From positions 280,245-344,244 of the IMG/VR virus record IMGVR_UViG_3300019776_000324: DNA of 64,000 nt. One strand, 5' to 3'. Each line of letters starts with the position of its first letter. The first letter of the stretch is position 1. Below the pieces are notes generated by a model, which searched no databases, was not told the DNA's origin, and saw only the letters and a program-made list of their open reading frames with translations. Of the stretch, positions 7,396 to 25,030 are shown one piece after another. The position numbers and the translations under genes were made by a program.

Positions 7396-7396
7396 A

Positions 7397-7535: not shown

Positions 7536-7561
7536 TAATACATTACTAACAGGAGATTTAA

Positions 7562-9741: not shown

Positions 9742-9778
9742 TTTTTAAACAAAATAAGTATATCATAAACAATGAATC

Positions 9779-9825: not shown

Positions 9826-9830
9826 AAAAT

Positions 9831-12488
9831 TTGAGTTATATAGATGCACTATTTGATCGTGAACACGATCGTATTCATGTTGTAGAACGACGAGATGGAA
9901 AGAGATGTTATCAAGAATATCCAGCCAACTATGTGTTCTACTACGAAGACCCTCGCGGTAAATTCCAAAGTATTTTTAACACACCTGTAAGTAGATTCTC
10001 TACTCGCAACAACAAAGAATTTCGCAAAGAGATTCGCATACAGTCAGGCAAGCAATTATACGAGTCGGATATCAATCCAATCTTTCGTTGCCTAGAAGAA
10101 AACTACAAAGGACAAGACGGTCCTAAATTAAATGTAGCGTTCTTCGACATTGAGGTGGACTTTGATCCTGATCGCGGATTTAGTCCACCAAGTGATCCGT
10201 TCAATGCTATCACTGCTATTTCAGTTTACTTGCAGTGGTTAGATCAGCTAGTCACTCTAGTAGTTCCACCCAAACATATGAGCACAGAAACTGCTCAGGA
10301 AATTGCCAGCGAGTTTGAAAACACCATTATCTTCCAAGACGAAGGTGAAATGTTAAAAACATTCCTGGACTTGATTGAAGATGCTGATGCACTGTCAGGT
10401 TGGAACAGTGAAGGCTTCGATATTCCGTACACAGTTAATCGTGTTACTCGTGTGTTAAGCAAAGACGACACACGGCGCTTCTGCTTGTGGAATCAATATC
10501 CTAAAAAGCGTATGTTTGAACGCTTTGGTAACGAACAAGAAACATATGACTTGATTGGCCGTGTGCATATGGACTATATGCAACTGTATCGCAAATACAC
10601 ATATGAAGAGCGTCATAGTTATAGCTTGGATGCTATTCTTGAATACGAAGGTCTGGAAGGCAAGACCAAGTTTGAAGGCACACTGGATCAGCTTTACAAT
10701 CAAAACTTCAAGACATTTATTGAGTATAACCGACAAGACGTTAACGGGTTGGCACAGATGGATAAGAAGTTAAAGTTCTTGGATCTTGCCAATACACTGG
10801 CGCATGAAAACACAGTGTTGCTACAGACTACCATGGGTGCTGTGGCTGTAACAGAACAGGCTATTATTAATGAAGCACACGAGCGTGGCATGGTTGTTCC
10901 AAACCGTAAGGAACGCTATTCGGATGAAGACACTCAAGCGGCGGGTGCGTATGTTGCGTATCCACGCAAGGGCGTTCATGAATATGTCGGGTCGATAGAC
11001 ATTAACTCACTGTACCCTAGTGCGATTCGTGCGCTTAACATGGGACCTGAAACTATTGTTGGTCAACTTCGACCAGTAATGACTGATCGCTATATTGCTG
11101 ACAAGATGCGTAGCGGTAGTAGTTTTGCTGCGGCATGGGAAGGCTTGTTTGGTTCATTGGAATTCACAGCAGTAATGGAAATGCAAACAGGCACAGAAAT
11201 TACTATTGATTGGCAAGGCGGAGAAGAATCAGTTCACAGTGCCGCAGAAGTATGGAAGATTATCTTTGACAGTAATCAACCTTGGATGATCAGTGCCAAC
11301 GGAACAATCTTTACCTATGAGCGTGAAGGTGTTATTCCCGGACTATTAAAACGCTGGTATGCCGAGCGTAAAGAAATGCAGGCTAAACTTAAACAATGTA
11401 CAACGGCAGAAGATGAAGAATACTGGGATAAACGACAACTCGTTAAAAAGATTAACCTTAATAGTTTGTATGGCGCAATTCTTAACCCTGGTTGCCGCTT
11501 TTTTGATAAGCGCATTGGACAATCTACCACACTAACTGGTCGTGCTATTGCCAAGCATATGGATGCGTATGTAAACGAATGTATTACAGGCAAGTATGAC
11601 CATGTGGGCGAATCAATCATCTATGGTGATACTGACTCTTGTTACTTTACTGCTTGGCCTGCTGTCAAGGAAGCAGTAGAGAAGGGCGAGATGGAATGGT
11701 CTAAAGATATTGCTGTCCAACTTTACAACAGTATAGCTGATCAAGTCAATGCTAGTTTCCCAGGATTTATGGAACAGTCATTCCATGTGCCTAGAGAGAT
11801 GGGCAGTGTGATTAAAGGTGGCCGCGAGATTGTAGCAAGCAAAGGCTTGTTTATTACCAAGAAGCGTTATGCTGTCCTGTATTATGACAAAGAAAACAAG
11901 CGTGTGGACACACATGGCGAACCAGGCAAAGTAAAAGCCATGGGCTTGGACTTGAAGCGTAGTGATACTCCTAAGGTTATTCAAGAATTCTTAAGCGAGA
12001 TCTTAAACGATGTACTGACTGGTAAAACTCGTGAAGAAATCATTGAAAAGATTCGAAACTTTAAATATGAATTCAAAGAGCGACCAGGTTGGGAGAAGGG
12101 TAGTCCCAAGCGTGTAAACAACTTGACCAAGTATGGCAAGGAAGAAGAACGCCTAGGTAAAGCCAATATGCCAGGACATGTCCGTGCTGCACTTAACTGG
12201 AATAATTTGCGTAGAATGAACAGCGACAAGTATAGTTTACAAATTGTTGATGGAATGAAAACTATTGTATGTAAACTAAAGCAAAATCCCCTGGGTTGGA
12301 CCAGCATAGGCTATCCTACAGATGAATTGCATTTACCACAGTGGTTCAAAGAATTACCATTTGACGATAGTGAAATGGAAGCAACAGTGGTTGATCAAAA
12401 ATTAGACAACTTATTAGGTGTGCTAGAATGGGATTTAAAGTCGGCCACTAATACTGAAAACACCTTCCAAAGTTTATTCGAGTTCTAA
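9831..12488 (+). CDS. Family B DNA polymerase (T4 gp43-like), TTG start
   Basis: ExoI FDIEVD; DINSLYPS; KINLNSLYG; YGDTDS; KKRYA. Confidence 0.97.
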   Translation: MSYIDALFDREHDRIHVVERRDGKRCYQEYPANYVFYYEDPRGKFQSIFNTPVSRFSTRNNKEFRKEIRIQSGKQLYESDINPIFRCLEENYKGQDGPKLNVAFFDIEVDFDPDRGFSPPSDPFNAITAISVYLQWLDQLVTLVVPPKHMSTETAQEIASEFENTIIFQDEGEMLKTFLDLIEDADALSGWNSEGFDIPYTVNRVTRVLSKDDTRRFCLWNQYPKKRMFERFGNEQETYDLIGRVHMDYMQLYRKYTYEERHSYSLDAILEYEGLEGKTKFEGTLDQLYNQNFKTFIEYNRQDVNGLAQMDKKLKFLDLANTLAHENTVLLQTTMGAVAVTEQAIINEAHERGMVVPNRKERYSDEDTQAAGAYVAYPRKGVHEYVGSIDINSLYPSAIRALNMGPETIVGQLRPVMTDRYIADKMRSGSSFAAAWEGLFGSLEFTAVMEMQTGTEITIDWQGGEESVHSAAEVWKIIFDSNQPWMISANGTIFTYEREGVIPGLLKRWYAERKEMQAKLKQCTTAEDEEYWDKRQLVKKINLNSLYGAILNPGCRFFDKRIGQSTTLTGRAIAKHMDAYVNECITGKYDHVGESIIYGDTDSCYFTAWPAVKEAVEKGEMEWSKDIAVQLYNSIADQVNASFPGFMEQSFHVPREMGSVIKGGREIVASKGLFITKKRYAVLYYDKENKRVDTHGEPGKVKAMGLDLKRSDTPKVIQEFLSEILNDVLTGKTREEIIEKIRNFKYEFKERPGWEKGSPKRVNNLTKYGKEEERLGKANMPGHVRAALNWNNLRRMNSDKYSLQIVDGMKTIVCKLKQNPLGWTSIGYPTDELHLPQWFKELPFDDSEMEATVVDQKLDNLLGVLEWDLKSATNTENTFQSLFEF

Positions 12489-12489
12489 C

Positions 12490-13425
12490 ATGAAATTAAG
12501 TCAACTTGTCTCTTTTAAAAACGAACTTGAAAAACTTTCAGCAATACCAGCACATCAAACAGCTGATCTGGAAGTTAAAAAAATTACACATTTGGTTGAA
12601 TCGTTTCCAACAACAGCTTCTCAATTTGATAAATTTGAACAGGCTAGACTTTCTATTACAGAAAAATTTGTTGAACTCGAATCTCAACTTGATGAATTAA
12701 AGCAATCGATTAAGAAACAAATTGAAGATGCTGAGCGTCCTTGGTTTGCTGAAAGTTATCGTTTGTACGAGAAGGAGATGGTCTTTGAATCAGTTGACTA
12801 CATTTTAAATCGTCAACCTGCTATATTAGATGAAACCAACGAGTTCTATAAAACTCGTATCACAAGATATACAAACTGGAAATATCCAGCTATGATTATT
12901 CGTCCTGGACTAGAAACACATAGCAACTATATGGTTGACTGCGATCCATTATATCTAGTTGATGAACAATACGATTTATTAACTCCGGTTATAAATCAAC
13001 ACAGCGAAGTTTACCAAAAAAGATTGCGCCCTTATGTTATCAACGAAAGACAGGATGGCGAAATACTTACTCGTTTGCCCAACAACCAATTTGGATTAAT
13101 ACTTGCTTATAACTTTTTTAATTTTAGACCGTTAGAAGTTATTCGAAAATATCTTACTGAACTTTATGAAAAATTAAGAACAGGCGGAGTATTGATCATG
13201 ACCATAAATGACTGTGATCGGGACAAAGGTGTAATGCTAGTAGAACAACATTTTGCTTGTTATACTCCTGGAAACATGATCATCGATCTGGCAAAGAGTA
13301 TCGGGTATGAAGTAGAGTTTGTTTGGGACGACCAAGGACCATCTACCTGGATCGAATTCCGCAAACCGGGCGAGTTGATTAGTCTTAGAGGCGGTCAAAC
13401 TTTGGCAACAATTGTACCAAAATAA
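12490..13425 (+). CDS. Class I SAM-methyltransferase-like protein with N-terminal coiled coil
   Basis: C-terminal LILAYNFFNF..LYEKLRTGGVLI pattern. Confidence 0.5.
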   Translation: MKLSQLVSFKNELEKLSAIPAHQTADLEVKKITHLVESFPTTASQFDKFEQARLSITEKFVELESQLDELKQSIKKQIEDAERPWFAESYRLYEKEMVFESVDYILNRQPAILDETNEFYKTRITRYTNWKYPAMIIRPGLETHSNYMVDCDPLYLVDEQYDLLTPVINQHSEVYQKRLRPYVINERQDGEILTRLPNNQFGLILAYNFFNFRPLEVIRKYLTELYEKLRTGGVLIMTINDCDRDKGVMLVEQHFACYTPGNMIIDLAKSIGYEVEFVWDDQGPSTWIEFRKPGELISLRGGQTLATIVPK

Positions 13426-13436
13426 ATCAAAAACAG

Positions 13437-13465
13437 TTGCAAAATCTAAATAAACCAGTTATAAT
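13437..13465 (+). promoter_or_regulatory. sigma70 promoter with an embedded late TAAATA motif
   Basis: TTGCAA-17-TATAAT. Confidence 0.6.
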
Positions 13466-13484
13466 CAACAACAAGGAGAATTAC

Positions 13485-14207
13485 ATGAGAGATCACTTAT
13501 TAGACTTAGTAGAACACACGCACGACTTAGGTTGCATTGACCTAGTTAAAATTACAGGAACTGCCCAAGAGACAGATATCTTTGGTATTGCCGAAGATCG
13601 TAGCGTTATTGTAGAAGGCAAGTATGCTGGCCCAGTGGGAGAATTTGTTGGCTTATTTGGTATGCCAAACTTGGCAAAACTTAAGGTATTGTTAAACTTG
13701 CAAGAGTACAAAGAAGATGCCAAACTCAGTATCACTAACAAAGCTGATGGCACATTAGATGGCATCAACTTTGAAAACAAATCAGGCGACTTTAAAAACA
13801 ACTATCGTTTCATGACAGCGGCTGCAGTTAACGAAAAGGCTAAGACAGCTAAGATGCGCCCAGTTACATGGCAAGTTGAGTTTACTCCTACTGTAGGATC
13901 AATCCAGCGTTTAAAAATGCAAGCACAGGCCAATGCCGAGGAACCAACATTCCAAGTTAGCACTGATGGTAGTGATTTAAAATTTGCATTTGGTGATCAT
14001 TCAACTCACAGTGGTAACTTTGTATTCCAATCTGGTGTAGGCGGACAACTCAAACGAGCATGGTCATATCCAATTGCTCATGTCATTAGTATTTTAAATT
14101 TAACTGGTGACAAGACTATGCGTTTCAGTGATGACGGTGTTGCAGAGATTACTGTTGATTCTGGCTTGGCTGTTTATAGTTACAAGATTCCAGCGCAGTC
14201 TAAATAA
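13485..14207 (+). CDS. DNA polymerase sliding clamp (gp45-like)
   Basis: SD AAGGAG before ATG 13485; about 240 aa; clamp-like alternating beta/alpha pattern; near the polymerase. Confidence 0.7.
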   Translation: MRDHLLDLVEHTHDLGCIDLVKITGTAQETDIFGIAEDRSVIVEGKYAGPVGEFVGLFGMPNLAKLKVLLNLQEYKEDAKLSITNKADGTLDGINFENKSGDFKNNYRFMTAAAVNEKAKTAKMRPVTWQVEFTPTVGSIQRLKMQAQANAEEPTFQVSTDGSDLKFAFGDHSTHSGNFVFQSGVGGQLKRAWSYPIAHVISILNLTGDKTMRFSDDGVAEITVDSGLAVYSYKIPAQSK

Positions 14208-14210
14208 TCA

Positions 14211-14831
14211 ATGGGGGCTCCTTATACTATCCTGGATCACATTCAACTTGACTGTGATTCAGCTACTGACATTGTTGTTGAAATTGGTAGCGAAAATGGA
14301 GAGGGGAGCAGTCGATGGTTATATCAGTGGTCTAGTAACCGTGATGTAAAATTTTATAGTATAGATGTAGAGCACAGTGAAAGAGAAATAAGTTATCCAG
14401 AAATACCTTGGGTAGTATCGGAATCTGGATCATTGTGGTGTAAAAACATATTACCAACTCTAAATAAAGCTATTAAAGTATTATACTTAGATAATTTTGA
14501 TTACATGTACAACACTAACAACCCATCGGTATTGGAACAGTATGCTCGTCAAGTAACCTTGTATGCGCAACGAGGAGTAGTTATGAATAATCAAAATTGC
14601 ATGGAAGAACATCGATTACAAGTTGAATATTGTTTACCGTACATGGCAGAACAATCTGTAATTATAATGGATGATACTTATTATGACCCAGCATTAGAAT
14701 TTCAACCAGCAAACGAACTTCCACAATGGTATGGTAAATGTGCTACTGCTATGCCACTAATGATCGAAGCTGGATATTCTATAATTAGAGACCAAGAACA
14801 CAATATAAATTATGCCATTAAATCAAGATAA
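14211..14831 (+). CDS. SAM-dependent methyltransferase-like protein
   Basis: VVEIG, YSIDVE, LYLD and IIMDD motifs. Confidence 0.55.
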   Translation: MGAPYTILDHIQLDCDSATDIVVEIGSENGEGSSRWLYQWSSNRDVKFYSIDVEHSEREISYPEIPWVVSESGSLWCKNILPTLNKAIKVLYLDNFDYMYNTNNPSVLEQYARQVTLYAQRGVVMNNQNCMEEHRLQVEYCLPYMAEQSVIIMDDTYYDPALEFQPANELPQWYGKCATAMPLMIEAGYSIIRDQEHNINYAIKSR

Positions 14832-16449
14832 CTTAACAGCCAAACAAAACGATTACGCTGTATTCTTACCAGCTATCAGTGGCTTCTATGCTACTTTTGT
14901 CGGTAAACAACGAGATCCAGTAAATGGACCTTATGTAGATCCAGCTCGCTTGCCAGCTGGCATTCCGGACATGGAAATGCTTAACTGGCTTAATCCACAG
15001 AAAGGTATGTTTCCGTACAAGTGGTCTTTGTACTCAGGCGGACATGCTAACTTAGATCTTAACAAACAAGACTGGTCCGAAGACATGGTTCGCAATCGCG
15101 ATCCGGGTTCAGTTATCCTTGGCGACTCGGGTGGATTCCAGATTGCTAAAGGCTTGTGGGAAGGTGACTGGAAGGCTAACAGTGGTTGTCCTAAAGCGCA
15201 GAAGAAGCGTGATGCTGTACTTAAATGGTTAGATGGTGTTGCTGACTATGGCATGATTCTTGATATTCCAACTTGGGTTATCCACGATAAGAAAGCCAGT
15301 GCCGCTTGTCAAATTACCACACTTCAAGAAGCTGTGGACGCTACCAAGTACAACAACGACTACTTTATGAAGCATCGCAAAGGTGTTAAGAATGGTGGTG
15401 CCAAGTTCTTAAATGTTTTACAAGGTGCTAATCATGCTGACGCAGATCGTTGGTATGAAACAATGAAACACTATTGTGATCCTAAAGTATATCCAGACAC
15501 ACATTTTAATGGCTGGTCCATGGGTGGTCAGAACATGTGTGATGTACACTTGGTACTTCGTCGGTTGGTAGCACTTAGACACGATGGCTTGCTACAAGAA
15601 GGTGTTCACGATTGGATGCACTTCTTGGGCACAAGCAAACTAGAGTGGGCAGTATTATTAACAGACATTCAACGAGCTGTTCGCAAATATGTTAATCCTG
15701 CATTTACTATTAGTTTTGACTGCGCTAGTCCATTCTTAGCCACAGCTAACGGACAAGTATATCATCATATTGACTTGCCACACAATGACAAGTGGTGTTA
15801 TCGAATGAGTCCTATTGTGGACGATAAGAAATATGCCACAGACACTCGTCCATATGGTCCTACAGTAGTTCAAGAAGGCTATGTTGATCACTTTGATGAA
15901 AGTCCAATCAGCCGAGAGCTTAAGATGAAAGACATTTGCATCTATAAAGCAGGTGTTCGTAAAACTGATGCTGAACTAAACGGAGAAACATTTGATCCCA
16001 ACAACATGAATCATTTCCATGTTGCTCCAGACTTAAACAAAATTGGTAAGAATGGCAAGACATCATGGGATAGTTTCAGTTATGCATTGTTAATGGGCCA
16101 TAATGTTTGGATGCACTTGGAAGCAGTACAACGAGCCAACCGTGAATACGATGCTGGATCTTGGCCCAAGATGATGTGGAACGAAAACGGTGACCATGCC
16201 CGCTTTAAAGACATTGTGGATGCTATCTTTGCCACATCTGATCGTGCAGAAGCTGAAGCTATCATTGAACACTATGATCGCTATTGGATGGACATTGTTG
16301 GTACTCGTGGATTCAAAGGCAAGAAAGCCAAGAACGCACACAGTCAGTTTAATGCCTTGTTTGAAGTTGATGACAATGACGGAGTCGACGGCGACGAAGT
16401 GGAATTTGATGAGTCAAAACTGGATCACTTGGGAGACCAAATTGTTTAA
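14812..16449 (+). CDS. tRNA-guanine transglycosylase fold protein (DpdA/TGT-like base-exchange enzyme)
   Basis: DSGGFQ, ILDIP, VLQG, MGG, HFLG and FDCASP align with TGT catalytic residues; no CxCxxC zinc motif seen. Confidence 0.8.
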   Translation: MPLNQDNLTAKQNDYAVFLPAISGFYATFVGKQRDPVNGPYVDPARLPAGIPDMEMLNWLNPQKGMFPYKWSLYSGGHANLDLNKQDWSEDMVRNRDPGSVILGDSGGFQIAKGLWEGDWKANSGCPKAQKKRDAVLKWLDGVADYGMILDIPTWVIHDKKASAACQITTLQEAVDATKYNNDYFMKHRKGVKNGGAKFLNVLQGANHADADRWYETMKHYCDPKVYPDTHFNGWSMGGQNMCDVHLVLRRLVALRHDGLLQEGVHDWMHFLGTSKLEWAVLLTDIQRAVRKYVNPAFTISFDCASPFLATANGQVYHHIDLPHNDKWCYRMSPIVDDKKYATDTRPYGPTVVQEGYVDHFDESPISRELKMKDICIYKAGVRKTDAELNGETFDPNNMNHFHVAPDLNKIGKNGKTSWDSFSYALLMGHNVWMHLEAVQRANREYDAGSWPKMMWNENGDHARFKDIVDAIFATSDRAEAEAIIEHYDRYWMDIVGTRGFKGKKAKNAHSQFNALFEVDDNDGVDGDEVEFDESKLDHLGDQIV

Positions 16450-16804
16450 TCCAATTTTTATTCCGTTGGTGTTGTTGTTTATTAAACATTGGTATGTTGA
16501 TTTTGTCAATCAAACACAGGACGAAATTGACAGCAAAGGTACCTACGGTGGACTGGATGGCATGTCACACAGTGCCAAACACGGATTAGGAACTATATTT
16601 GTATTTTTATTAGTAGGATTAGATCCAGCACTATCTGTAACACTAGGTGCAATTGATATGGTTGTACACTATCACATCGATTGGATCAAAATGCGGTTTG
16701 GTACTCGTGATGTTGCTACTAAGGAATTTTGGAACCAATTAGGGTTAGATCAGTTAGCACACGCTCTAACCTATATTGGACTTGTTTGGTTATTATGGAT
16801 ATAA
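16442..16804 (+). CDS. DUF3307-like membrane protein (TTG start)
   Basis: KHWYVDF..Q, HSAKHG, HYHIDW.K and LDQLAH motifs; hydrophobic segments. Confidence 0.65.
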   Translation: MFNPIFIPLVLLFIKHWYVDFVNQTQDEIDSKGTYGGLDGMSHSAKHGLGTIFVFLLVGLDPALSVTLGAIDMVVHYHIDWIKMRFGTRDVATKEFWNQLGLDQLAHALTYIGLVWLLWI

Positions 16805-16806
16805 AA

Positions 16807-17013
16807 ATGATTGATAAATTACAGCACAGACTCAACCACTTAGAAAACGATCATGCTGCACTTAACAAGCGTATTGACGGAATGGAATCAACTGGTGTCT
16901 TTGAAGATGCTACCTTAGAGGTTTTGAAGAAGCAAAGGTTGCATTTGAAGGACGAAATCTCTAAAATAAAACTTCAACTTGCATACGAAGCTGGACAACA
17001 GGAAAACGATTAA
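16807..17013 (+). CDS. DUF465/YdcH-like small coiled-coil protein
   Basis: H..L...I.......LKKQRLHLKDEI. Confidence 0.7.
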   Translation: MIDKLQHRLNHLENDHAALNKRIDGMESTGVFEDATLEVLKKQRLHLKDEISKIKLQLAYEAGQQEND

Positions 17014-17546
17014 TGATTAGAGATGGGCACGATGATGTAAGTTTCTTTGTAGGAACTGAAGTAGAACACACTCCTGCATTTGGACAAATTACATTATTTG
17101 TAGTAGGCTTACAGTCTATAGCAGATATTAAGAACGCACTTAAGACACACCGTGCTCTAGGCGGATACCTTGTTACCCATATATATTTTGGTGCTAACCA
17201 AAGTTTTCCTAACCCAGAATATAGTGATGCTCCTACCTGGCGTGATTGGGAAGGAATGATTAATACATTCTTGCAAGACGGATACTTATGCACACTTGAT
17301 ATTGATGTAAAGTGTGTAGAAGGCCTGCTTGAATCTCCGTTGGTGGAATACCACAACTTTATTCCAATGATTTCTATTAAACTCCCTTATATTAACCAAC
17401 TTGGATACAATGCAACTATTAAACTTGATGACAAAGATTTTAAAGCAACCAACCCGGGCGTCTGGTGCCACTCGCTACACAGCTTACAAAAGCGCGAGGT
17501 GTTTACTGACTGGTCTAAATACACAAAGGACGAAGTAATTAAATGA
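17013..17546 (+). CDS. Hypothetical protein in the TGT-like block
   Basis: 177-aa ORF coupled to both neighbours. Confidence 0.65.
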   Translation: MIRDGHDDVSFFVGTEVEHTPAFGQITLFVVGLQSIADIKNALKTHRALGGYLVTHIYFGANQSFPNPEYSDAPTWRDWEGMINTFLQDGYLCTLDIDVKCVEGLLESPLVEYHNFIPMISIKLPYINQLGYNATIKLDDKDFKATNPGVWCHSLHSLQKREVFTDWSKYTKDEVIK

Positions 17547-18007
17547 TACAAGAACAACGAGAAACAATAGAGAGAATTAAATCCGCAGCCAATCGTAAGA
17601 TATGGGTTACTTTCCAGCGAGAAGGTATTCACTGCTATCCTGCGGCAGCAACAGATCCTGCGTTAAATACTAACGATGAATACAATGTTGCGTTCCTTGC
17701 TAGCCCTCACCGTCATATCTTTCACTTTAGGGTGTCAATCAATGTCTTCCACAATGACCGAGACATTGAGTTCATCCAGTTCAAACGCTGGCTCGAGAAC
17801 TTATACAGTGGGACCGGTCCCTATAATGAAAATCGAGTTTTAGAACTCAACTACAAGTCCTGCGAAATGATTGCAGACGACTTGTACTTACAAATTGCAG
17901 GCCGCTATCCTGGTCGTGCTGTAGAAATCGAAGTGTCCGAAGACGGCGAGAACGGATGCTTGATTAGTTATAACCTTACTCGTCCAACACAATCAATTGT
18001 AATTTAA
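17543..18007 (+). CDS. QueD/PTPS-like T-fold protein (second, divergent copy)
   Basis: H.Y..A...HRHIFHFRV..DRDIEF..K..L and C-terminal SCEMIA..EV.EDGE pattern. Confidence 0.6.
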   Translation: MIQEQRETIERIKSAANRKIWVTFQREGIHCYPAAATDPALNTNDEYNVAFLASPHRHIFHFRVSINVFHNDRDIEFIQFKRWLENLYSGTGPYNENRVLELNYKSCEMIADDLYLQIAGRYPGRAVEIEVSEDGENGCLISYNLTRPTQSIVI

Positions 18008-18019
18008 AAAGGAAATAAA

Positions 18020-18247
18020 ATGGGAAAGCCACAACATCGTGTAAACCCTAGAGCTTTGCAAGCATTGGAAGATTTGTCAAACTATTTGGAATTCTGTGTA
18101 GACTACGGTTACAGATATCGCGAAGAAGATTTGTATAACTTCAAAGCGTATGCTTGGCAACAGTACAACAAGTTTAGCCAGGGTAAAAATGCCAAGAACA
18201 TGTGGGATGAAGATTCACGCAGATTCTCAGGATATCGCCGTGCGTAA
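18020..18247 (+). CDS. Hypothetical protein
   Basis: SD AAGGA; 75 aa. Confidence 0.6.
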   Translation: MGKPQHRVNPRALQALEDLSNYLEFCVDYGYRYREEDLYNFKAYAWQQYNKFSQGKNAKNMWDEDSRRFSGYRRA

Positions 18248-19445
18248 GTTATTCTACATGGGCTTAGAGAGTTATGAGGCTCGCTATACCTTACAACTAA
18301 CTGAATGGAATCGGCGTGTGTTTGATCGTCGCGGACTAGATGTGGTATATGTTCCAGGCCAAACCATTGACGACACTCAGGCTATCTGTGTAGGACAAGT
18401 ATTAGATGCACATGGTCGTAGTTACTTTGGTATGAGTCAGATGATGAATCTGGTTCAAATGATGCGTAACGGAGAAGTTACCAGTGAAGATGTTATCTAC
18501 TTCGAAGACATGTTCCAGCCTGGCATTGAAAGTTTGCCATACATCATGGATCAAGTTCCAGTAACACATCGTCCGCGTGTGTATGTACGCTGTCTAGCAC
18601 AAGCTATTGACCCAGATGACTTTGTTCATGTATGGGGCATGCAAAAGTGGATGGACTTGTACGAAAAGATGGTCAATGAGTTTGTTACAGGCGTACTAGC
18701 TACTAACGAAGAGATGGTAGCTCATATGCGTATTGCAGGCTGGTCGGCTCCAATTTACAATATTAGTGGACTAGCATTTGGCAAAGAAGAAGTTCTAGAG
18801 CGTATAGGTGGCTCGCAAAATATTAAACCGTTTGACCAACGCAAGATGCGTGTGGGCTTTGCCGCTAGGTTTGACCAAGAGAAGCAACCAGACTTCTTTA
18901 TGGACTTGATTGATATGTATCACGATCAGGGCAAACACAAGGATGTAGAGTTTGCTATATTCCAAGGTGGCCCGTTGCGTAGTAACAATCAAAAGTATAT
19001 CGATCGTGCTCGTCAGTTAGAGCGTGAAGGTAAACTTAAAATTTATGAGAACCTAAAGAAAAATGATTATTATAATCTCCTTAATGATACTCGTGTGCTT
19101 TTCAATTGCGCTTTACAAGACTGGGTATCAAACACAGTATCCGAAGCAGATACACTTGGATCGAATGTTCTATTTCCTGCTTATCGTTCTTTTCCTGAAA
19201 CTTTCGCAGATGATCCTAACAGGCTTTACATTCCTTGGTCAATAGATGATGCTTATCACAAGTTAGAAAACTTGCTAGGTGAACTACATCATAACACAGG
19301 ACTTATTAGTGACTGGACCGATGGTACTGTGGATCGTGTTGTAGACATTTTAGAAGGCAAAGGCGAACAATGGAATCGTGCAGGTAATCGCTATCGTGAT
19401 CATGTAAGCCAAGCCAAGTATCATGTAAGAAAGATCGAAGGATGA
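18240..19445 (+). CDS. GT-B glycosyltransferase (GT4-like), GTG start
   Basis: FAARFDQEKQP and SNTVSEA..LG..VLFP..SFPE donor-binding motif. Confidence 0.75.
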   Translation: MRKLFYMGLESYEARYTLQLTEWNRRVFDRRGLDVVYVPGQTIDDTQAICVGQVLDAHGRSYFGMSQMMNLVQMMRNGEVTSEDVIYFEDMFQPGIESLPYIMDQVPVTHRPRVYVRCLAQAIDPDDFVHVWGMQKWMDLYEKMVNEFVTGVLATNEEMVAHMRIAGWSAPIYNISGLAFGKEEVLERIGGSQNIKPFDQRKMRVGFAARFDQEKQPDFFMDLIDMYHDQGKHKDVEFAIFQGGPLRSNNQKYIDRARQLEREGKLKIYENLKKNDYYNLLNDTRVLFNCALQDWVSNTVSEADTLGSNVLFPAYRSFPETFADDPNRLYIPWSIDDAYHKLENLLGELHHNTGLISDWTDGTVDRVVDILEGKGEQWNRAGNRYRDHVSQAKYHVRKIEG

Positions 19446-20392
19446 GAGTAATAGTAACTGGTGGTGCCGGCTATATTGGCGGCACAACTGTTCTTAAATT
19501 GCTTGATGCTGGACACAGTGTTTTGGCAATTGATCGTCAAATGCCTCCAAAACATTTAGTTGACTGTGGTGCTAAATGGCATACTGGTGACTTTTCTAGT
19601 GAAATTGGATTAGACTGTATAAGATTGTTTGCACCAGATGCTATTATACATTGTGCTGGTACTAGTTTAGTTGGACCCAGTATGACAAATCCTGGCGAGT
19701 ACTACGACAATAATTTTGTTAAGACTTTAAGTATGGTTAACTATTTGGTTAACAACAAGATGACTAACATTAGAGTTATTTTCAGTAGTAGTGCTGCAAC
19801 TTATGGCAATCCAGTAATGACGCCTATACAAGAAGTTGATCCAACTGAACCAATCAGTCCATATGGTCAGAGCAAGCTCATGATTGACTGGATGTTGAGT
19901 AGCTATCGCAATGCTTACGGTCTGGACTTTGTAAGTTTTAGATACTTTAATGCTTGTGGTGCAGAGAGTCAAGCTAGAAATGGACAACTTCCTGGTGCCA
20001 CGCATATTATTGCTAGAGTATTAGAAGCCATGCGAGATAAAAAACCATTTACTCTTAATGGCACAGACTATCCTACCAAAGACGGTACCTGTGTTCGAGA
20101 CTACATTCATGTTGAAGATTTAGCATTGGCACATATTTTAGCAATTGATAAATCTATTCCTAGTGACATTTATAATCTTGGCACTTCTGAGGGAACAAGC
20201 AATGCCGAAATTATTGACACAGCTAGAATTGTCACAGGACAGAAAATAGAAGTTGTAGTTGGACCGCAACGCCCAGGTGATCCTGCTATCCTTACTGCTG
20301 ATGCTGGCAAGTTTATCAAGGTCAGCAATTGGCAACCACAATTCAAGTTAAATGATATTATTCAACATGCATGGGCTTGGTATAATAGATGA
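19442..20392 (+). CDS. galE: UDP-glucose 4-epimerase
   Basis: TGGAGYIG; FSSSAATYG; YGQSK; RYFNACG; VRDYIHVEDLA. Confidence 0.88.
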   Translation: MRVIVTGGAGYIGGTTVLKLLDAGHSVLAIDRQMPPKHLVDCGAKWHTGDFSSEIGLDCIRLFAPDAIIHCAGTSLVGPSMTNPGEYYDNNFVKTLSMVNYLVNNKMTNIRVIFSSSAATYGNPVMTPIQEVDPTEPISPYGQSKLMIDWMLSSYRNAYGLDFVSFRYFNACGAESQARNGQLPGATHIIARVLEAMRDKKPFTLNGTDYPTKDGTCVRDYIHVEDLALAHILAIDKSIPSDIYNLGTSEGTSNAEIIDTARIVTGQKIEVVVGPQRPGDPAILTADAGKFIKVSNWQPQFKLNDIIQHAWAWYNR

Positions 20393-20979
20393 GCTTTCAA
20401 GCCTTATTTGATTTTGAATCTACTCTAGCTGAATATACCGGTGCACCATATGTTGTATTAACAGATGGTTGCACCCATGCTCTTGAACTTTGTTTTAGAC
20501 ACGACAATATCAAACAAACAGCGTTTACTCCATATACCTATCTGAGTGTTCCTATGCTTATGCATCACTTGGGAATCAAATACGATTATCACACTCAAGA
20601 ACATAGACAACAATGGGTCGGGGAATACAAGTTTGAAGGTACTCGTATTTGGGACAGTGCCCGCAGACTTGAGCGCAATATGTATCGCCCAGGACAGTTT
20701 CAATGTTTAAGTTTTGGTTGGTCTAAACCTTTGCAACTAGGCAAGGTTGGTGCTATACTGTTAGACGATGAGCTAGCATACAAAAAGTTCAGTCGACAAC
20801 GAGCAGACGGTCGCGATCTACATGTTGCTTGGGAAACTGAAACAGACCTAATACTAGGTTATCATTACTGCCCAACATTAGAATTGTGTGCTAAGGGATT
20901 AGAATTGTTACCAACTGTAGAACCAAAATCACAACCTGGAGTTTATCCTGATTGCAGAAATATTTCATTTGCCTCTTGA
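20389..20979 (+). CDS. Short DegT/DnrJ/EryC1/StrS-like PLP aminotransferase
   Basis: LTDGCTHAL, WDSA, SFGWSKPL..G..GAI; only 196 aa. Confidence 0.65.
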   Translation: MSFQALFDFESTLAEYTGAPYVVLTDGCTHALELCFRHDNIKQTAFTPYTYLSVPMLMHHLGIKYDYHTQEHRQQWVGEYKFEGTRIWDSARRLERNMYRPGQFQCLSFGWSKPLQLGKVGAILLDDELAYKKFSRQRADGRDLHVAWETETDLILGYHYCPTLELCAKGLELLPTVEPKSQPGVYPDCRNISFAS

Positions 20980-21049: not shown

Positions 21050-21847
21050 TTGACAACATTTACATCAGAAGATCGAAACAACGCTACTAAACTAGTAGAT
21101 GAAGCACCGTTCCATCCTGGATACGAAGATGCCGCAGTAAATCCTAACGAAAGCGGTCGTCCACTTAGCGTGGTAATTCGCGAACAAATGAAGCTTAGAG
21201 GCAAACGCTTTTGGGCAGGTGATAATGTATCTGAATACATTACACAAGAATCAGACAAAGAAATGCTTATCAACGAAGCTACACAGGCTTTTGAAAAGGT
21301 ATTAGACACCTTGTTGATTGATCGTGAAAATGATCCTAACAGTAAGGGCACAGCTCGTCGTTTGGCTAAGATGTATTATAATGAAATTATGGCAGGTAGA
21401 TATGAGAAGGCACCAGATGCTACTGCTTTTCCAAATGATAGTGAGGATAGATATGAAGGTATGTTGGTTGTACGCAGTGAATTGCGTTCTATGTGTAGTC
21501 ATCATCATCAGCCAGTTAGCGGGGTGGCCTATATTGGCATCATCGCAGCAAACAAACTCATTGGTCTTAGCAAGTATACTCGCATTGCTCAATGGTGTGC
21601 TCGCCGTGGCACTTTACAAGAAGAGTTATGTAACGACATCGCAAGAGAAATAATGAAGGCTACAGATTCACAGAATGTTGGCGTGTATATTCAAGCAACA
21701 CATGGTTGCTGTGAGAATCGCGGCATTATGGCACACAGTAGTTTAACACAAACTACAGTACTTAAAGGTGTGTTCAACACAGATCCAGCAACTAAGAAAG
21801 AGTTTATGGACAATATTAAATTACAACAGGAGTTTGCCCCAAGATGA
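21050..21847 (+). CDS. folE: GTP cyclohydrolase I (TTG start)
   Basis: SMCSHH, GLSK..R, LQE, HGC..RG motifs. Confidence 0.95.
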   Translation: MTTFTSEDRNNATKLVDEAPFHPGYEDAAVNPNESGRPLSVVIREQMKLRGKRFWAGDNVSEYITQESDKEMLINEATQAFEKVLDTLLIDRENDPNSKGTARRLAKMYYNEIMAGRYEKAPDATAFPNDSEDRYEGMLVVRSELRSMCSHHHQPVSGVAYIGIIAANKLIGLSKYTRIAQWCARRGTLQEELCNDIAREIMKATDSQNVGVYIQATHGCCENRGIMAHSSLTQTTVLKGVFNTDPATKKEFMDNIKLQQEFAPR

Positions 21848-22584: not shown

Positions 22585-22615
22585 ACTAGTATTGTTAATT
22601 AATCTAGGTTATACG

Positions 22616-25030
22616 ATGAAGCGGATTTTGCTTTTAGCAACAGTAGTTCTACAACTAGCGGCCTGTGCTGGTGGAGGTGGTGGAGGTGGCGCAAATAATC
22701 CTGGCGGTAGTGCTCCACCAACCCCAAGCAGTGGGCCAACTTATCTTCGATCAGAAGTACCCTTTTCAACTCCGACCAAGGTAGCTACAGTTGATCCATT
22801 GGTAGCTATTACAACTTCAGCCGCAGTGGTTGATACCTTTACTGCAAATATTTCTGGGTCAGGCGAAGATGTTATTATTGCCGGCCGTCAAACTCAACCA
22901 ACTAGTATTGCCAATTGGAGCAATAGTAAAATTAGTATGCTAAGTTGGTCAAATGGTACATTGGTTGATCGAACAGCGCAATGGTTCACAGGAGACTCTA
23001 ATGTAATACTAGGAGCAGATCCTAATATTAAATTTGCTGACTTCTTTAAGAGCGGGCGCACTGATATGTTTGTGGCACCTAGTACCGATGCACAAAATTA
23101 TGGTCCAGCATACCTTTATCAAAATACAGGAACTACATTCAATCGCATTACAATTCCGTTGTCCAATGTATGGGGACACGATACTGCTGTAGCTGATTTA
23201 AATGGCGATGGATATAAGGATTTTGTAATTACCGACTATGGTCCTAATATGACTGTCGGTATCAATAACCGAGTTAACGGTTTTAAAACTTATACCTCTG
23301 CGTTTGGGCCTGGGCCTAGTGCCGCATCAGTTGCAGTTGCAGATTTTATGGGCAACGGAACTACCACTATGGTATTAACTGATACCGACACTAATATTGC
23401 TAACAGCACAAAATTATACAAGTGGGCTATTGACGGCGCAGATCAATTAAAGTTTGACATGGTCAGTGTATTGCCTGCTCCTAGGCCTGGTATTAATCAT
23501 AATATTAGAAGTTTGGTGTATGACTTTGATTCAAGTGGCGCCAACAGCTTGTTAATCTTTGGAACCAACACCGCAACAAAATATTCTGACATACAATTTT
23601 TAAAAAATAACGGAAGCGGAGCATTTACAGATGTTACAGATACTACTCTAGTAGGGTATAATCACAACACATACAGTAGCTACAATCCAAAAATTGTTGA
23701 TGTCAATGGAGATGGATTAACTGACATTTTAGTTAGTGGACAGGACTTTTCTGGTAATAACAACAGCACTCAAGTCTTGTTGCGTAGTCGAGATAACAAA
23801 TATGTGGCGGCCTATCAAAATTTATTAACTGATTTTGCCACACAATCAAATCAAATACAAGGAACAGACAATTCCTCCAACACCGTAAATGTTGTAAAGG
23901 GGCCTAACGGAAAAATGTATCTGGTTACTGCTACTAGTTTTATGAATGGTGCAGACCGTCAACTAGCAGTATATCTTAGTAATATCAGTGACTCAACTAG
24001 TGTAGTGACTCCAAAGTTGGCCTTGGACTTGATTAAATCCAAATGGCCATACATGACTGATATTCAAGCCAACACTGCACTGGCCATGACTTCGTCTACA
24101 TACATGACTAATGCAGGCACTGGGCTAGTAATCAATCCAGATTCATTGCTACAACCAATTGGGTCGTTGTCCTTGATGACACAAAATGGATTAACACCGA
24201 TCAAAGGATATATTGCAGGTGCAGACATTGGTGACGGTAATACACTAGTGCTAGATAGCATAGGGCGTGGGTTTACTACTAGTCTTAAAGCAATGAATGT
24301 ATCTGGATTAAACAGTTTTGGTTATAACACCGAGCATGTTGACCAACACAACTTAACTAGTCATGCAGAATATCTAGTCAACGGTAGTCCAATGACCTAT
24401 GGTAACATGCGTATTGCTACTGAAAATCGTAATGCCTTGTTTGGTAACGATCAAGGTCCGGGTATGTTGCAGAAACCCACACAATATTCCATAGGTATTC
24501 CCGAAGCATACAGAAATGGTAAGTTTAGTTATGGTATGCAGTACACCAACTTGAACACCAATCCGTGGATAGCATTTGGTGGAGCATGGGGTAGCATTAC
24601 TAATTCTGGTATTATGGATAATGTGGCCACTTACAAAGATGGTGGATTTAGTGCCCAGGCCAGCATGATGCATGTTACCACTAATGTTACTCCTGGATTG
24701 ATTACTAAAGTTAATAATATAGTTGGTGGCTGGGCCGAAAGTGGTTATCGTTATACTGAAGATCAGTTTGGTGATATTGGAGTTTATGCTGGTGTTAAGC
24801 CCGTGGTACTGTCAGGCAATGTTGAAGCAAGAATGCCAACTAGTGTTGACAGCGCAGGCAATATAGTGTACACTAACAAGAAATTAGCGATACAAAATCA
24901 AGTCACCCCTTATGTTAGAGCACTATATACTAACATGATCGATAAGAAGACCATGTATCGTTTTAGTGTAATGGGTACACAGCAAGGTCAATATCGACTC
25001 ATGCACGAACTTAGATTTTGGATAGATTAA
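22616..25030 (+). CDS. Lipoprotein with FG-GAP-like repeats and a C-terminal beta-barrel-like region
   Basis: MKR-hydrophobic-LAAC lipobox; DLNGDGYKD and DVNGDGLTD; amphipathic beta-strand C-terminus ending LRFWID. Confidence 0.65.
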   Translation: MKRILLLATVVLQLAACAGGGGGGGANNPGGSAPPTPSSGPTYLRSEVPFSTPTKVATVDPLVAITTSAAVVDTFTANISGSGEDVIIAGRQTQPTSIANWSNSKISMLSWSNGTLVDRTAQWFTGDSNVILGADPNIKFADFFKSGRTDMFVAPSTDAQNYGPAYLYQNTGTTFNRITIPLSNVWGHDTAVADLNGDGYKDFVITDYGPNMTVGINNRVNGFKTYTSAFGPGPSAASVAVADFMGNGTTTMVLTDTDTNIANSTKLYKWAIDGADQLKFDMVSVLPAPRPGINHNIRSLVYDFDSSGANSLLIFGTNTATKYSDIQFLKNNGSGAFTDVTDTTLVGYNHNTYSSYNPKIVDVNGDGLTDILVSGQDFSGNNNSTQVLLRSRDNKYVAAYQNLLTDFATQSNQIQGTDNSSNTVNVVKGPNGKMYLVTATSFMNGADRQLAVYLSNISDSTSVVTPKLALDLIKSKWPYMTDIQANTALAMTSSTYMTNAGTGLVINPDSLLQPIGSLSLMTQNGLTPIKGYIAGADIGDGNTLVLDSIGRGFTTSLKAMNVSGLNSFGYNTEHVDQHNLTSHAEYLVNGSPMTYGNMRIATENRNALFGNDQGPGMLQKPTQYSIGIPEAYRNGKFSYGMQYTNLNTNPWIAFGGAWGSITNSGIMDNVATYKDGGFSAQASMMHVTTNVTPGLITKVNNIVGGWAESGYRYTEDQFGDIGVYAGVKPVVLSGNVEARMPTSVDSAGNIVYTNKKLAIQNQVTPYVRALYTNMIDKKTMYRFSVMGTQQGQYRLMHELRFWID

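Follow-up and report, generated by a model that had tools for sequence, protein, structure and literature searches.

Phages are known to substitute 7-deazaguanine for guanine in DNA, but could a phage also attach a sugar to the substituted base? The question is raised by a locus from a huge, uncultured phage, analyzed here within a window of 64,000 nucleotides, in which genes predicted to make and insert 7-deazaguanine are interleaved with a glycosyltransferase (GT) and NDP-sugar enzymes. A first-pass annotation, made from the sequence alone, had proposed on this basis a sugar-decorated deazaguanine in DNA, with modification of tRNA as the alternative. We asked whether the elements of the locus are real, whether the GT belongs with the deazaguanine genes, and which reading best accounts for the linkage.

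Organization of the locus

Every element listed by the first-pass annotation is present on the + strand (Table 1), although two assignments require refinement: the "QueD-fold" protein belongs to a named family, DpdL, and the "aminotransferase" is not a full-length enzyme, but a conserved mini DegT-like protein. Three small ORFs that had not been listed (DUF3307, DUF465 and a 75-aa ORF) also lie within the block. Gene junctions overlap by 1-20 nt, and no + strand terminator-like site lies between 13 and 23 kb. The arrangement is not chance: the same order recurs in hundreds of viral contigs. No QueC was found among the window ORFs scanned (the one weak QueC hit is a NAD synthase), and neither QueC, QueF nor Gat-QueC was found in any of the GT loci fetched.

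Table 1. Features of the locus, with positions in the window and the evidence for each assignment ("distant loci" are the set of 80 used for comparison).
Position	Strand	Assignment	Evidence and remarks
14211-14831	+	206-aa ORF with weak class-I methyltransferase (Methyltransf_24) similarity; membership in the module uncertain	Pfam E=1.4e-3, below cut-off; no PHROG or NCBIfam hit; overlaps the TGT-like gene by 20 nt; in only some relatives (a 230-aa ORF, possibly but not necessarily homologous, is in this position in two related loci and absent in two others)
14812-16449	+	TGT-fold, DpdA-like protein (545 aa); predicted transglycosylase	See text
16406-16804	+	DUF3307 small membrane protein; start uncertain (ATG 16406 or TTG 16442)	Pfam PF11750 29.5 bits; phrog_2470 membrane protein; in only part of the clade (21 ORFs of the locus set)
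16795-17013	+	DUF465 small coiled-coil protein; conserved member of the module, role unknown	Pfam PF04325 53.4 bits; between the TGT-like gene and DpdL in 44/80 distant loci
17013-17546	+	Conserved 177-aa protein (u177) of unknown fold and function; probably an enzyme of the pathway	No hit in Pfam, PHROG, NCBIfam or PDB; 15 invariant residues in 22 members at 60% dereplication; in 55/80 distant loci, just upstream of DpdL; directly upstream of DpdA3 in ACP17, and also present in PA5oct
17543-18007	+	DpdL, a QueD paralogue; predicted 7-carboxy-7-deazaguanine decarboxylase	See text
18020-18247	+	75-aa ORF between DpdL and the GT, conserved in position	Called as a 76-aa gene in relatives; in 56/80 distant loci, immediately before the GT; no family hit
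18240-19445	+	GT-B fold, GT4-like retaining glycosyltransferase (401 aa from the GTG at 18240)	See text; ORF opens at 18150, but relatives are about 400 aa, making the GTG the likely true start
19442-20392	+	UDP-glucose 4-epimerase (GalE), overlapping the GT stop by 4 nt	TIGR01179 302.9 bits (cut-off 262.3); Pfam Epimerase 6e-52; an epimerase-like ORF directly follows the GT in five distant loci
20389-20979	+	196-aa mini DegT/DnrJ-like (PLP sugar aminotransferase-like) protein, conserved at this short length	Pfam DegT matches only the N-terminal 55 residues; PDB aminotransferase alignment covers the SF..K motif; D89-S90-A91 and S108-F109..K113 invariant in 10 members
21050-21847	+	GTP cyclohydrolase I (FolE)	Pfam PF01227 139.7 bits; in 67/80 distant loci
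25431-25937	+	QueD (6-carboxytetrahydropterin synthase) with a CxxxHGY motif	Pfam PTPS 49.2 bits; aligns with the ACP17 and phiST QueD proteins
25798-26199	+	MazG-like nucleoside triphosphate pyrophosphohydrolase; true start probably after the QueD stop	Pfam MazG 26.2 bits; phrog_4856 E=8e-21
26244-29323	+	Second sugar block: 272-aa glycosyltransferase, dTDP-glucose 4,6-dehydratase-like enzyme and NDP-hexose C-methyltransferase; possibly part of the same glycan pathway, membership not shown	phrog_14945 glycosyltransferase; GDP_Man_Dehyd/Epimerase and TIGR01181 243 bits, below cut-off; Methyltransf_14/13/23; lies between QueD/MazG and PRT/QueE
30122-30658	+	6-oxopurine (xanthine-guanine type) phosphoribosyltransferase-like protein (PRTase)	Pfam Pribosyltran 58.4 bits; nearest NCBIfam model is Gpt-type XPRT, below cut-off; a PRTase is in 49/80 distant loci, and next to QueE in BUCT-ZZ01 and in PA5oct (EST35_0321)
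31547-32404	+	QueE (7-carboxy-7-deazaguanine synthase, radical SAM)	phrog_2076 E=1.3e-53; NCBIfam QueE models hit, all below cut-off; 32% identical to the annotated PA5oct QueE over the full length
33476-34732	+	Nucleotide-sugar dehydrogenase (UGDH-like); may supply a uronic-acid sugar	Pfam UDPG_MGDP_dh; TIGR03026 136 bits, below cut-off; UGDH genes inside the module in 3 of the distant loci sampled
50018-50098		tRNA-Tyr(GTA)	Rfam; anticodon read from the sequence

The TGT-like protein and DpdL

The 545-aa protein gave no hit in Pfam, PHROG, NCBIfam or PDB-sequence searches, and it lacks both the TGT zinc motif and any sequence-level match to PF01702. Structure prediction was more informative. 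The AF2 model (pLDDT 88.4) was compared to PDB using Foldseek, and the top 13 matches are all TGT, DpdA (7ui4), ArcTGT or QTRT. The protein contains GDSGGFQ and ISFDCASP motifs; D105, S106, G108, H270 and D303 – the two aspartates being the predicted catalytic residues – are invariant in 80 diverse members, with D151 conserved in 79 of 80. Profile–profile alignment (hhalign) against the DpdA3 type gave a probability of 97.3% (E=2e-11). Homologues sit beside QueE in PA5oct and beside QueF/QueC/FolE in Vibrio phage 2.275.O. Together these data point to a deeply divergent DpdA, the nearest named relative of which is DpdA3.

The assignment of the QueD-fold protein to DpdL rests on phrog_17812 (E=1e-33), on tblastn hits to the DpdL archetypes of ACP17 (52%) and phiST (32%), and on the sequence LASPHRHIF, which matches the LxxxHRHxF signature; the QueD Cys is lacking. 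The decarboxylation of 7-carboxy-7-deazaguanine (CDG) by DpdL was predicted by Cui et al. 2023, but has not been reconstituted.

Given that the TGT fold is primarily a tRNA enzyme fold, the substrate could instead be tRNA, with a deazaguanine inserted at position 34 of phage-encoded or host GUN-anticodon tRNAs and then glycosylated by the GT4 enzyme. Indeed, all four GUN tRNAs are encoded in the window: Asp, Asn and His were found by ARAGORN and Tyr by Rfam. There also appears to be a eukaryotic precedent in QTMAN, a GT4-family enzyme that would mannosylate queuosine. This alternative is not excluded, but is unlikely: DNA of PA5oct is reported to resist restriction at G-containing sites (PMC12191111), the gene sits among replication genes such as PolB, primase and helicase, DpdA3-type relatives occur in phages whose DNA is fully substituted, guanine-salvage and permease genes suggest bulk flux, and the zinc subdomain of the tRNA enzymes is absent.

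A further possibility concerns the timing of substitution. The PRTase could convert CDG or DG into a ribonucleotide, as TubE does in tubercidin synthesis, with kinases and ribonucleotide reductase then giving 7-deaza-dGTP, MazG removing dGTP, and the polymerase incorporating the analogue; the TGT-like and GT proteins would have auxiliary or repair-type roles. The recurrence of the PRTase, the presence of MazG both here and in the phiST cluster (which also contains a kinase-like ATPase), and the complete replacement seen with the DpdA3 class all fit such a pre-replicative route. However, the TGT-like protein is the best-conserved gene of the module and keeps both base-exchange aspartates invariant across relatives of about 30% identity, the PRTase is absent from many loci, and Cui et al. 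argue for post-replicative insertion wherever a DpdA is present. We thus consider this route improbable.

Linkage of the glycosyltransferase to DpdL

The GT scores below the Pfam cut-off (PF00534, 21.8 bits), although the X1 orthologue scores 45.5 bits. The AF2 model (pLDDT 75) nevertheless matches glycogen synthase, GlgM, BshA, MshA, SenB and PimB' in Foldseek searches, and the ACP17 orthologue is the second-best BFVD hit. The motifs E..RYT, R..EKQP and D/EX7E are conserved: the enzyme looks catalytically competent.

If the GT is part of the module, then its distribution should be correlated with that of the TGT-like gene. To test this hypothesis we collected 160 IMG/VR loci containing the GT family. 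DpdL is present in 152, at a median gap of 244-657 bp; in the remaining 8 the GT lies at the contig edge. Thus, in 152 of 152 informative loci the GT sits next to DpdL (within 2.4 kb) and a TGT-like gene. While the 160 loci collapse into two broad, probably related phage clades – independent support therefore rests on about 9 GT clusters (at 50% identity) – all 9 have DpdL. Among 50,697 isolate records the GT family was found only in DpdL phages (ACP17, Phosso, 11 PA5oct-like phages, X1/BUDD, BCSR5 and BUCT-ZZ01), with the exception of five BshA-context outgroup records. The linkage holds in seven isolate lineages, and adjacency survives four gene orders and three TGT-like subfamilies.

The converse is not true: DpdL occurs without the GT in several lineages, including Cellulophaga phage phiST, which has plain 7-deazaguanine (dDG). 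It is therefore possible, though we think it unlikely, that the module places plain dDG or dCDG in DNA, and that the GT and sugar genes – traveling with it only through shared regulation or ancestry – glycosylate another base, a virion or host-surface component, or a protein. The absence of an obvious acceptor group on dDG, and the further glycan-type genes in the second sugar block, are in keeping with this view. Against it stand the linkage itself, which persists through rearrangement and exchange of the TGT-like subfamily, the strong conservation of the catalytic motifs, and the fact that no pyrimidine hydroxymethylation genes (thymidylate-synthase- or TET-type) were seen in the neighborhoods sampled.

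A possible sugar-adding step

Sugar-nucleotide enzymes recur inside the module in different arrangements (UGDH, GFO/IDH/MocA, an epimerase and a class-III aminotransferase). Genes for purine handling (PRTase, xanthine/uracil permease, PnrA, IMPDH/GMPR and YhhQ) also recur inside it, and an ATP-grasp enzyme and zinc-type alcohol dehydrogenase-like proteins are among its accessory genes. The reading that best accounts for these data, and in which we place moderate confidence, is that the block is the core of a QueC-less 7-deazaguanine DNA-hypermodification module of a large jumbo-phage clade. According to this hypothesis FolE, QueD and QueE turn GTP into the free base CDG (chemistry established for these families, but here supported by homology only), DpdL converts CDG to 7-deazaguanine, and the TGT-fold protein is inferred to remove guanine from phage DNA through its two conserved aspartates and insert the deazapurine. 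The dedicated retaining GT4 enzyme would then attach a sugar to the deazaguanine, either as the free base before insertion or in DNA, from a phage-made UDP-sugar (GalE, the mini DegT-like protein and further sugar genes). This last step is inferred from gene linkage alone, and since 7-deazaguanine has no side-chain hydroxyl or amine, the acceptor atom is unclear. The guanine-type PRTase probably recycles the released guanine, while the MazG-like enzyme could clear dGTP or play another role in nucleotide pools. The product would shield the genome from restriction enzymes and other DNA-targeting defences. The interpretation given in the first-pass annotation is thus supported, its chemistry remaining an inference; we found no paper describing such a modification.

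Comparison with known systems

The nearest solved structures to the GT include enzymes with small-molecule acceptors as well as glycogen and sucrose-phosphate synthases, and none is a DNA enzyme; yet validated phage 5hmC-DNA GT-B enzymes also have BshA and MshA among their top PDB structural homologues. Glycosylated deazapurines are known as free metabolites: in huimycin, the GT HuiG puts GlcNAc on an O-methylated preQ0 base. That the present genes make a metabolite of this kind (like huimycin or dapiramicin), acting on the host or on competitors, might draw support from the small-molecule GTs among the structural neighbors and from the weak methyltransferase-like ORF preceding the TGT-like gene. 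This seems very unlikely, however, because a base-exchange (TGT-fold) enzyme is a constant member of the module, whereas characterised deazapurine metabolite clusters lack nucleic-acid insertion enzymes, and because of the restriction resistance reported for PA5oct DNA. In phiST, DpdL and MazG are present without the GT. PA5oct, in contrast, carries the same TGT-like, GT, DpdL, PRT and QueE set, and its DNA is reported to be sensed by nucleases specific for hypermodified DNA (PMC12191111).

Genomic context of the gene run

The 64-kb window has about 40% GC, carries nearly all of its genes on the + strand and belongs to a 344-kb contig of an uncultured jumbo phage. A megablast of the block against 50,697 phage records found nothing, and nothing in the isolate collection resembles the window at the nucleotide level. 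Neighboring genes of the run overlap by 1-20 nt, and no + strand terminator-like site lies between 13 and 23 kb. The first-pass annotation, which described a run of a TGT-fold protein, an unknown ORF, a divergent QueD-fold protein and a GT-B glycosyltransferase (GT), followed by galE, an aminotransferase and folE, with queD and queE downstream, is therefore correct in its observation. This includes the four Q-family (GUN) tRNAs: ARAGORN missed tRNA-Tyr(GTA), but Rfam found it. The alternative raised there, that the enzyme modifies these tRNAs, is considered unlikely. In all, the window holds about 30 tRNA genes – one an unusual 93-nt tRNA-Ser(ACT) – and a two-piece (permuted) tmRNA that fits the betaproteobacterial model; together with the tmRNA type, the phage-encoded DctP-type (TRAP) and TctC-type solute-binding proteins hint at a betaproteobacterial host.

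Features of the window and of related loci. Coordinates are those of the sequence named in the first column; L numbers denote fetched loci.
Sequence	Coordinates	Feature
Window	8692-9741	Radical SAM/SPASM protein with an N-terminal twitch-like domain, just upstream of the family-B DNA polymerase (a 355-aa radical-SAM/SPASM gene lies at the corresponding position in L004)
Window	9831-12488	PolB
Window	12490-14207	Two unknown ORFs, one a phrog_12062 protein
Window	14211-14831	Weak methyltransferase-like ORF
Window	14812-16449	545-aa TGT-like protein with no family hit
Window	about 16406-16804	DUF3307
Window	16795-17013	DUF465
Window	17013-17546	177-aa unknown
Window	17543-18007	154-aa phrog_17812 protein (DpdL)
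Window	18020-18247	75-aa ORF
Window	18240-19445	GT1/GT4-like protein (probable start the GTG at 18240)
Window	19442-20392	GalE
Window	20389-20979	196-aa DegT-like protein
Window	21050-21847	FolE
Window	22592-25030	812-aa FG-GAP repeat protein with a lipoprotein-type signal peptide, conserved at that position in related contigs
Window	25431-25937	QueD
Window	25798-26199	MazG
Window	26244-29323	Second GT, a 4,6-dehydratase and a sugar C-methyltransferase
Window	30122-30658	Gpt-like PRTase
Window	30619-31335, 35359-35997, 35994-36695	Three paralogous ORFs with weak DUF6071/GDSL-like similarity, one of them between the PRTase and QueE
Window	31547-32404	QueE
Window	32662-33414	NAD synthase (NadE), directly after QueE
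Window	33476-34732	Nucleotide-sugar dehydrogenase
Window	39819-40817 and 42081-42971	DctP-type (TRAP) and TctC-type solute-binding proteins
Window	42983-43387 and 50018-60775	Two-piece (permuted) tmRNA; tRNA genes
Window	50018-50098	tRNA-Tyr(GTA)
Window	60348-60440	tRNA-Ser(ACT), 93 nt
L001 (PA5oct)	8995-13380	EST35_0316-0321
L004 (relative whose TGT-like protein is 93% identical)	11640-16672	Three radical-SAM genes (516, 412 and 388 aa, one with a SPASM domain) inserted between the module genes
L014 (Vibrio phage Bakedbeans)	8251-9402	gp176, DpdL fused to an N-terminal domain of about 260 aa
L100; L133	7462-10007; 9385-9987	Nucleobase transport and salvage genes inside the module
L153 and L159 (metagenomic contigs)	5458-6950 and 6838-8370	TGT-like gene split into two ORFs

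A divergent TGT-like protein

Searches of the 545-aa protein against Pfam (including PF01702 TGT), PHROGs, NCBIfam and PDB chains found nothing, and a profile of 80 members reaches a TGT chain only at E=1.8. The family is nevertheless huge, comprising more than 7,400 clusters at 90% identity in a word-indexed search and 944 clusters at 50% identity at E<=1e-3. In 80 diverse members (27-63% identity) D105, S106, G108, H270 and D303 are invariant, D151 is conserved in 79 of 80, and Q204, G205, G234 and G273 are nearly invariant. D105 and D303 lie in the motifs GDSGGFQ and ISFDCASP, which appear to correspond to the two catalytic-aspartate motifs of TGT; on the basis of motif and fold match, rather than residue-level superposition, the three aspartates would be equivalent to TGT D102, D156 and D280. 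An AlphaFold2 model built on the alignment is confident (pLDDT 88.4), and its 13 best Foldseek matches in the PDB are all tRNA-guanine transglycosylases, the DNA preQ0 insertase DpdA (7ui4), archaeosine TGT or eukaryotic QTRT (E from 1e-6 to 8e-3, prob 1.0), although TM-scores are modest (0.3-0.5). The structural zinc site of TGT (CxCxxC...H) is missing: there is no CxCxxC motif, and no Cys is conserved above 59% in the 80 members.

Profile-profile comparison (hhalign) links the family to the DpdA3-type proteins of X1, ACP17 and BUCT-ZZ01 at 97.3% probability (E=2e-11 over 188 columns), whereas BLASTP against the ACP17, X1 and BUCT proteins gives E=0.004 to above 0.3. This indicates a superfamily relation and probably a separate subfamily. 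In isolates, homologues lie next to QueE in PA5oct-like phages, next to QueF, YhhQ, QueC, Gat-QueC and FolE in Vibrio phage 2.275.O, and next to primase and helicase genes in Phosso. The split gene of L153 and L159 could reflect a frameshift, an assembly error or an insertion. We infer that the protein is a divergent DpdA-type transglycosylase, probably of a subfamily of its own.

The QueD paralogue is DpdL

The protein that the first-pass annotation called a divergent QueD-fold protein is DpdL. Cui et al. (PMC10516641) define DpdL as a QueD paralogue in which CxxxHGH has become LxxxHRHxF – the catalytic Cys is lost while the metal-binding His residues are retained – and which is found with DpdA, FolE, QueD and QueE, but without QueC; it is proposed to decarboxylate CDG to 7-deazaguanine. 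The window protein reads LASPHRHIF, aligns with the ACP17 and phiST archetypes (52% and 32% identity, respectively, by tblastn) and differs from the three true QueD proteins in the same alignment. QueE is supported by phrog_2076 (E=1.3e-53) and by 32% identity over the full length to the annotated PA5oct QueE, although the hits to NCBIfam QueE models fall below their cut-offs. No QueC was found among the window ORFs scanned. The PP-loop protein directly after QueE was considered as a hidden QueC and rejected, since NAD_synthase scores 1e-48 and the QueC match covers only the PP-loop; it does, however, use the same carboxylate-amidating chemistry as QueC, and a role on CDG cannot be excluded. 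The fusion protein of Bakedbeans gave no Rosetta-stone clue: its N-terminal domain has no relative in our locus set.

The 177-aa protein has 15 invariant residues and is a constant neighbor of DpdL, and of DpdA3 in ACP17, yet no relative was detected in Pfam, PHROGs, NCBIfam or the PDB; a 22-member profile likewise gave none in the PDB or Pfam. It is a good candidate for a missing pathway enzyme.

Linkage of the glycosyltransferase to DpdL

Relatives of the GT are about 400 aa, so that translation probably begins at a GTG inside the ORF. The window protein scores 21.8 bits against Pfam PF00534 (cut-off 26.4), while orthologues score 45.5 bits (X1) and 26.5 bits (BUCT-ZZ01). The family keeps an N-terminal E..RYT motif, R..EKQP and a D/EX7E motif: R210, E214, K215 and E302 are conserved, and the first acid is Asp in the window clade (DX7E) and Glu elsewhere. 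The AlphaFold2 model (pLDDT 75) is a two-Rossmann GT-B fold with 276 PDB hits at E<=1e-3, the nearest being retaining GT4/GT5 enzymes: glycogen synthase, GlgM, sucrose-phosphate synthase (SPS), BshA, MshA, SenB and PimB'. Experimentally validated GT-B enzymes that glycosylate 5hmC in phage DNA also have BshA and MshA among their top PDB neighbors, and the profile is therefore compatible with a DNA acceptor as well as a small-molecule one.

To examine whether the GT is tied to the deazaguanine genes, its distribution was first determined among isolates. Three different GT queries recovered only ACP17, Phosso, eleven PA5oct-like phages, X1/BUDD, BCSR5 and BUCT-ZZ01 – all of which are also DpdL-positive – plus five PhiXhv/Ep032 records whose GT sits in a GlmS/BshB context and is an outgroup rather than a family member. 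In each of these DpdL-positive phages the GT lies inside the deazaguanine cluster, but in different positions: DpdL then GT in BUCT-ZZ01 and Phosso; GT, DpdA3, DpdL in X1; DpdA3, GT, DpdL in ACP17; and TGT-like, GT, DpdL in PA5oct. In BCSR5 the GT precedes a third kind of TGT-like protein.

IMG/VR was then scanned. Because a scan with the alignment of the window GT returned only 80-90% identical relatives, which are of no use for judging independence, the scan was repeated with an alignment led by the distant ACP17 GT, whose relatives are about 22% identical to the window GT; 80 loci were fetched around the relatives from each scan. DpdL was present in 152 of the 160, at a median distance of 244-657 bp, and in all 8 exceptions the GT lies within 1.5 kb of the contig start, where DpdL would be. 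The 160 loci fall into two broad and probably related clades, and independent support thus amounts to about nine GT clusters at 50% identity, every one with DpdL. The canonical order is TGT-like, DUF465, the 177-aa protein, DpdL, the roughly 76-aa ORF, GT, PRTase, FolE, QueE, and none of these loci holds QueC, QueF or Gat-QueC.

The relation is asymmetric. DpdL occurs without the GT in phiST-like phages, RHph_I1_18, Bakedbeans, D479 and Ahp1, as well as in MA9V-3 and Roos, which had DpdL hits but gave no hit to any of the three GT queries. This is what one expects if the GT acts downstream of, and depends on, the DpdL product. That the module yields plain dDG, with an unrelated role for the GT, appears unlikely.

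Accessory genes

Accessory genes support a purine-plus-sugar pathway. Inside the module in different distant loci we found UDP-glucose/GDP-mannose dehydrogenases, GFO/IDH/MocA and zinc-ADH oxidoreductase pairs, epimerases, an ATP-grasp enzyme next to the mini DegT-like protein, a class-III aminotransferase, a cytidylyltransferase, purine PRTases of Gpt or Apt type, a xanthine/uracil permease, a PnrA-type nucleoside-binding protein, IMPDH/GMP reductase and YhhQ. The nucleobase transport and salvage genes include an Apt-type PRTase between DpdL and the GT, and a YhhQ-type precursor transporter directly before the GT in 9 loci. No thymidylate-synthase-like or TET-like gene appeared in this sample. 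In the window itself QueD, MazG, the PRTase and QueE are interleaved with the second GT, the 4,6-dehydratase, the C-methyltransferase and the sugar dehydrogenase. Guanine salvage by the PRTase and pool control by MazG are plausible, while a nucleotide-level, pre-replicative route is considered improbable. The three radical-SAM genes inserted in L004 could be further tailoring enzymes or mobile insertions.

GalE exceeds the cut-off of the equivalog model TIGR01179 (302.9 bits against 262.3). The protein described in the first-pass annotation as an aminotransferase is not a full-length fold-type-I PLP enzyme of about 360 aa, as expected for DegT/DnrJ/EryC1 sugar aminotransferases; it lacks roughly half of the normal aminotransferase fold, and Pfam matches profile positions 28-85 only. 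Nor is it a pseudogene remnant: its length is conserved (192-201 aa) across relatives with 33-60% identity, and the PLP-binding residues (S108-F109..K113, the SFxxxK motif, and D89-S90-A91, the DxA motif) are invariant in 10 members, with the alignment to aminotransferase 9bgp covering the Lys motif. In some loci (L105 and L146) the gene sits next to an ATP-grasp enzyme and a UDP-sugar dehydrogenase.

A possible route to a glycosylated 7-deazaguanine

Synthesis of CDG from GTP by FolE, QueD and QueE is established for these families, although here it rests on homology alone, and conversion of CDG to 7-deazaguanine by DpdL is predicted in the literature. Exchange of DNA guanine by the TGT-like enzyme is inferred from its fold, catalytic residues and gene context, and from the phenotype of PA5oct, which carries the TGT-like, GT, DpdL, PRTase-like and QueE genes in one run. 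PA5oct DNA is reported to resist G-site restriction, and the phage is restricted by END nucleases that sense hypermodified DNA; that study named QueE and a PTPS but no transglycosylase, and did not determine the base (PMC12191111). Six PA5oct genes annotated as hypothetical (EST35_0316-0321), directly upstream of the annotated QueE (0322), can now be named: 0316 is the TGT-like transglycosylase, 0317 the GT4, 0318 DpdL, 0320 SDR-like and 0321 PRTase-like. The analysis names the likely missing transglycosylase of PA5oct-like therapeutic-candidate phages, whose G modification is still uncharacterized, and assigns a predicted function to a very large unannotated protein family.

Transfer of a phage-tailored sugar to the deazaguanine by the GT4 enzyme is inferred from linkage only. 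The sugar might be carried by N2, as in huimycin, by the electron-rich pyrrole carbon freed by decarboxylation (as a C-glycoside), or by O6, and might be added before or after insertion. We consider a deazaguanine DNA modification likely, and the whole model – including a sugar-deazaguanine link – about as probable as not; that the sugar ends up on the base in virion DNA is more tentative. It remains possible, though somewhat less likely than not, that an abundant, world-wide clade of jumbo phages, together with cultivable phages such as PA5oct, ACP17, X1, BCSR5, Phosso and BUCT-ZZ01, replaces genomic guanine with a glycosylated 7-deazaguanine by means of a new DpdA subfamily, DpdL and a dedicated GT4 enzyme, with decarboxylation by DpdL perhaps unmasking the pyrrole carbon or otherwise preparing the base for glycosylation. 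This would be the first sugar-decorated purine in any DNA: all known glycosylated DNA bases are pyrimidines (glucosyl-hmC, base J, glycosylated hmU and glycosylated 5-hydroxycytosine), and the 7-deazaguanine DNA modifications described so far carry small side chains. Such a base would be a new chemical class of genome modification, with consequences for restriction, CRISPR and type IV defense evasion.

Comparison with known systems

7-deazaguanine DNA modification with DpdA and DpdL is already known; what appears to be new is the conserved, dedicated GT4 and sugar-nucleotide add-on, the size and identity of the TGT-like subfamily, and the conserved 177-aa partner. Among the papers searched, none describes a glycosylated 7-deazaguanine in DNA or links a GT to DpdL. 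With the DpdL systems of Cui et al. (PMC10516641) the window shares FolE, QueD and QueE without QueC, a DpdL with the LxxxHRHxF signature, a distant TGT-fold transglycosylase and a nearby MazG, and with ACP17 it also shares the GT and the 177-aa protein. It differs in that its TGT-like protein probably belongs to a separate, much larger and unannotated subfamily. That paper does not mention a glycosyltransferase, and phiST, the only member with measured DNA, has no GT in the 16-kb stretch examined and gave no hit to any of the three GT queries. Cui et al. could not obtain dDG in E. coli from DpdL plus DpdA of phiST or ACP17, and suggested that other enzymes may be needed; our finding may explain the failure for ACP17, since the conserved GT, the 177-aa protein and the PRTase were not co-expressed there.

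The bacterial Dpd system (DpdA/DpdB/DpdC) and phage DpdA1/DpdA2 likewise use a TGT-fold DNA transglycosylase that exchanges G for a 7-deazaguanine, and the DpdA structure 7ui4 is among the top structural matches of the window protein. Those systems, however, insert preQ0 or its derivatives and need QueC, whereas here no QueC and no DpdB/DpdC partners were recognized among the window ORFs annotated, and the zinc motif and PF01702 match are absent.

Phage DNA glycosyltransferases acting on 5-hydroxymethylcytosine (T4 alpha/beta-GT; the metavirome GT-B enzymes GT53/66/94, bioRxiv 10.1101/2023.12.21.572611) are also GT-B fold enzymes encoded next to base-modifying genes and use UDP-sugars, but they act on a pyrimidine hydroxymethyl group and are linked to C5-methyltransferase/TET or thymidylate-synthase homologues; here the partners are purine and deazaguanine genes. 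In eukaryotic tRNA, queuosine appears to be decorated by a GT4-type enzyme (mannosyl-Q by QTMAN/GTDC1; galactosyl-Q is also known), that is, on a 7-deazaguanine derivative already in a nucleic acid. There the sugar goes on the cyclopentenediol, whereas here there is no queuosine side chain and the likely target is DNA.

[quoted passage not shown] A free metabolite as the product of the present module is nonetheless regarded as very unlikely. Huimycin and dapiramicin are free secondary metabolites of actinomycetes that start from preQ0 (QueC-dependent), and their clusters have no base-exchange enzyme.
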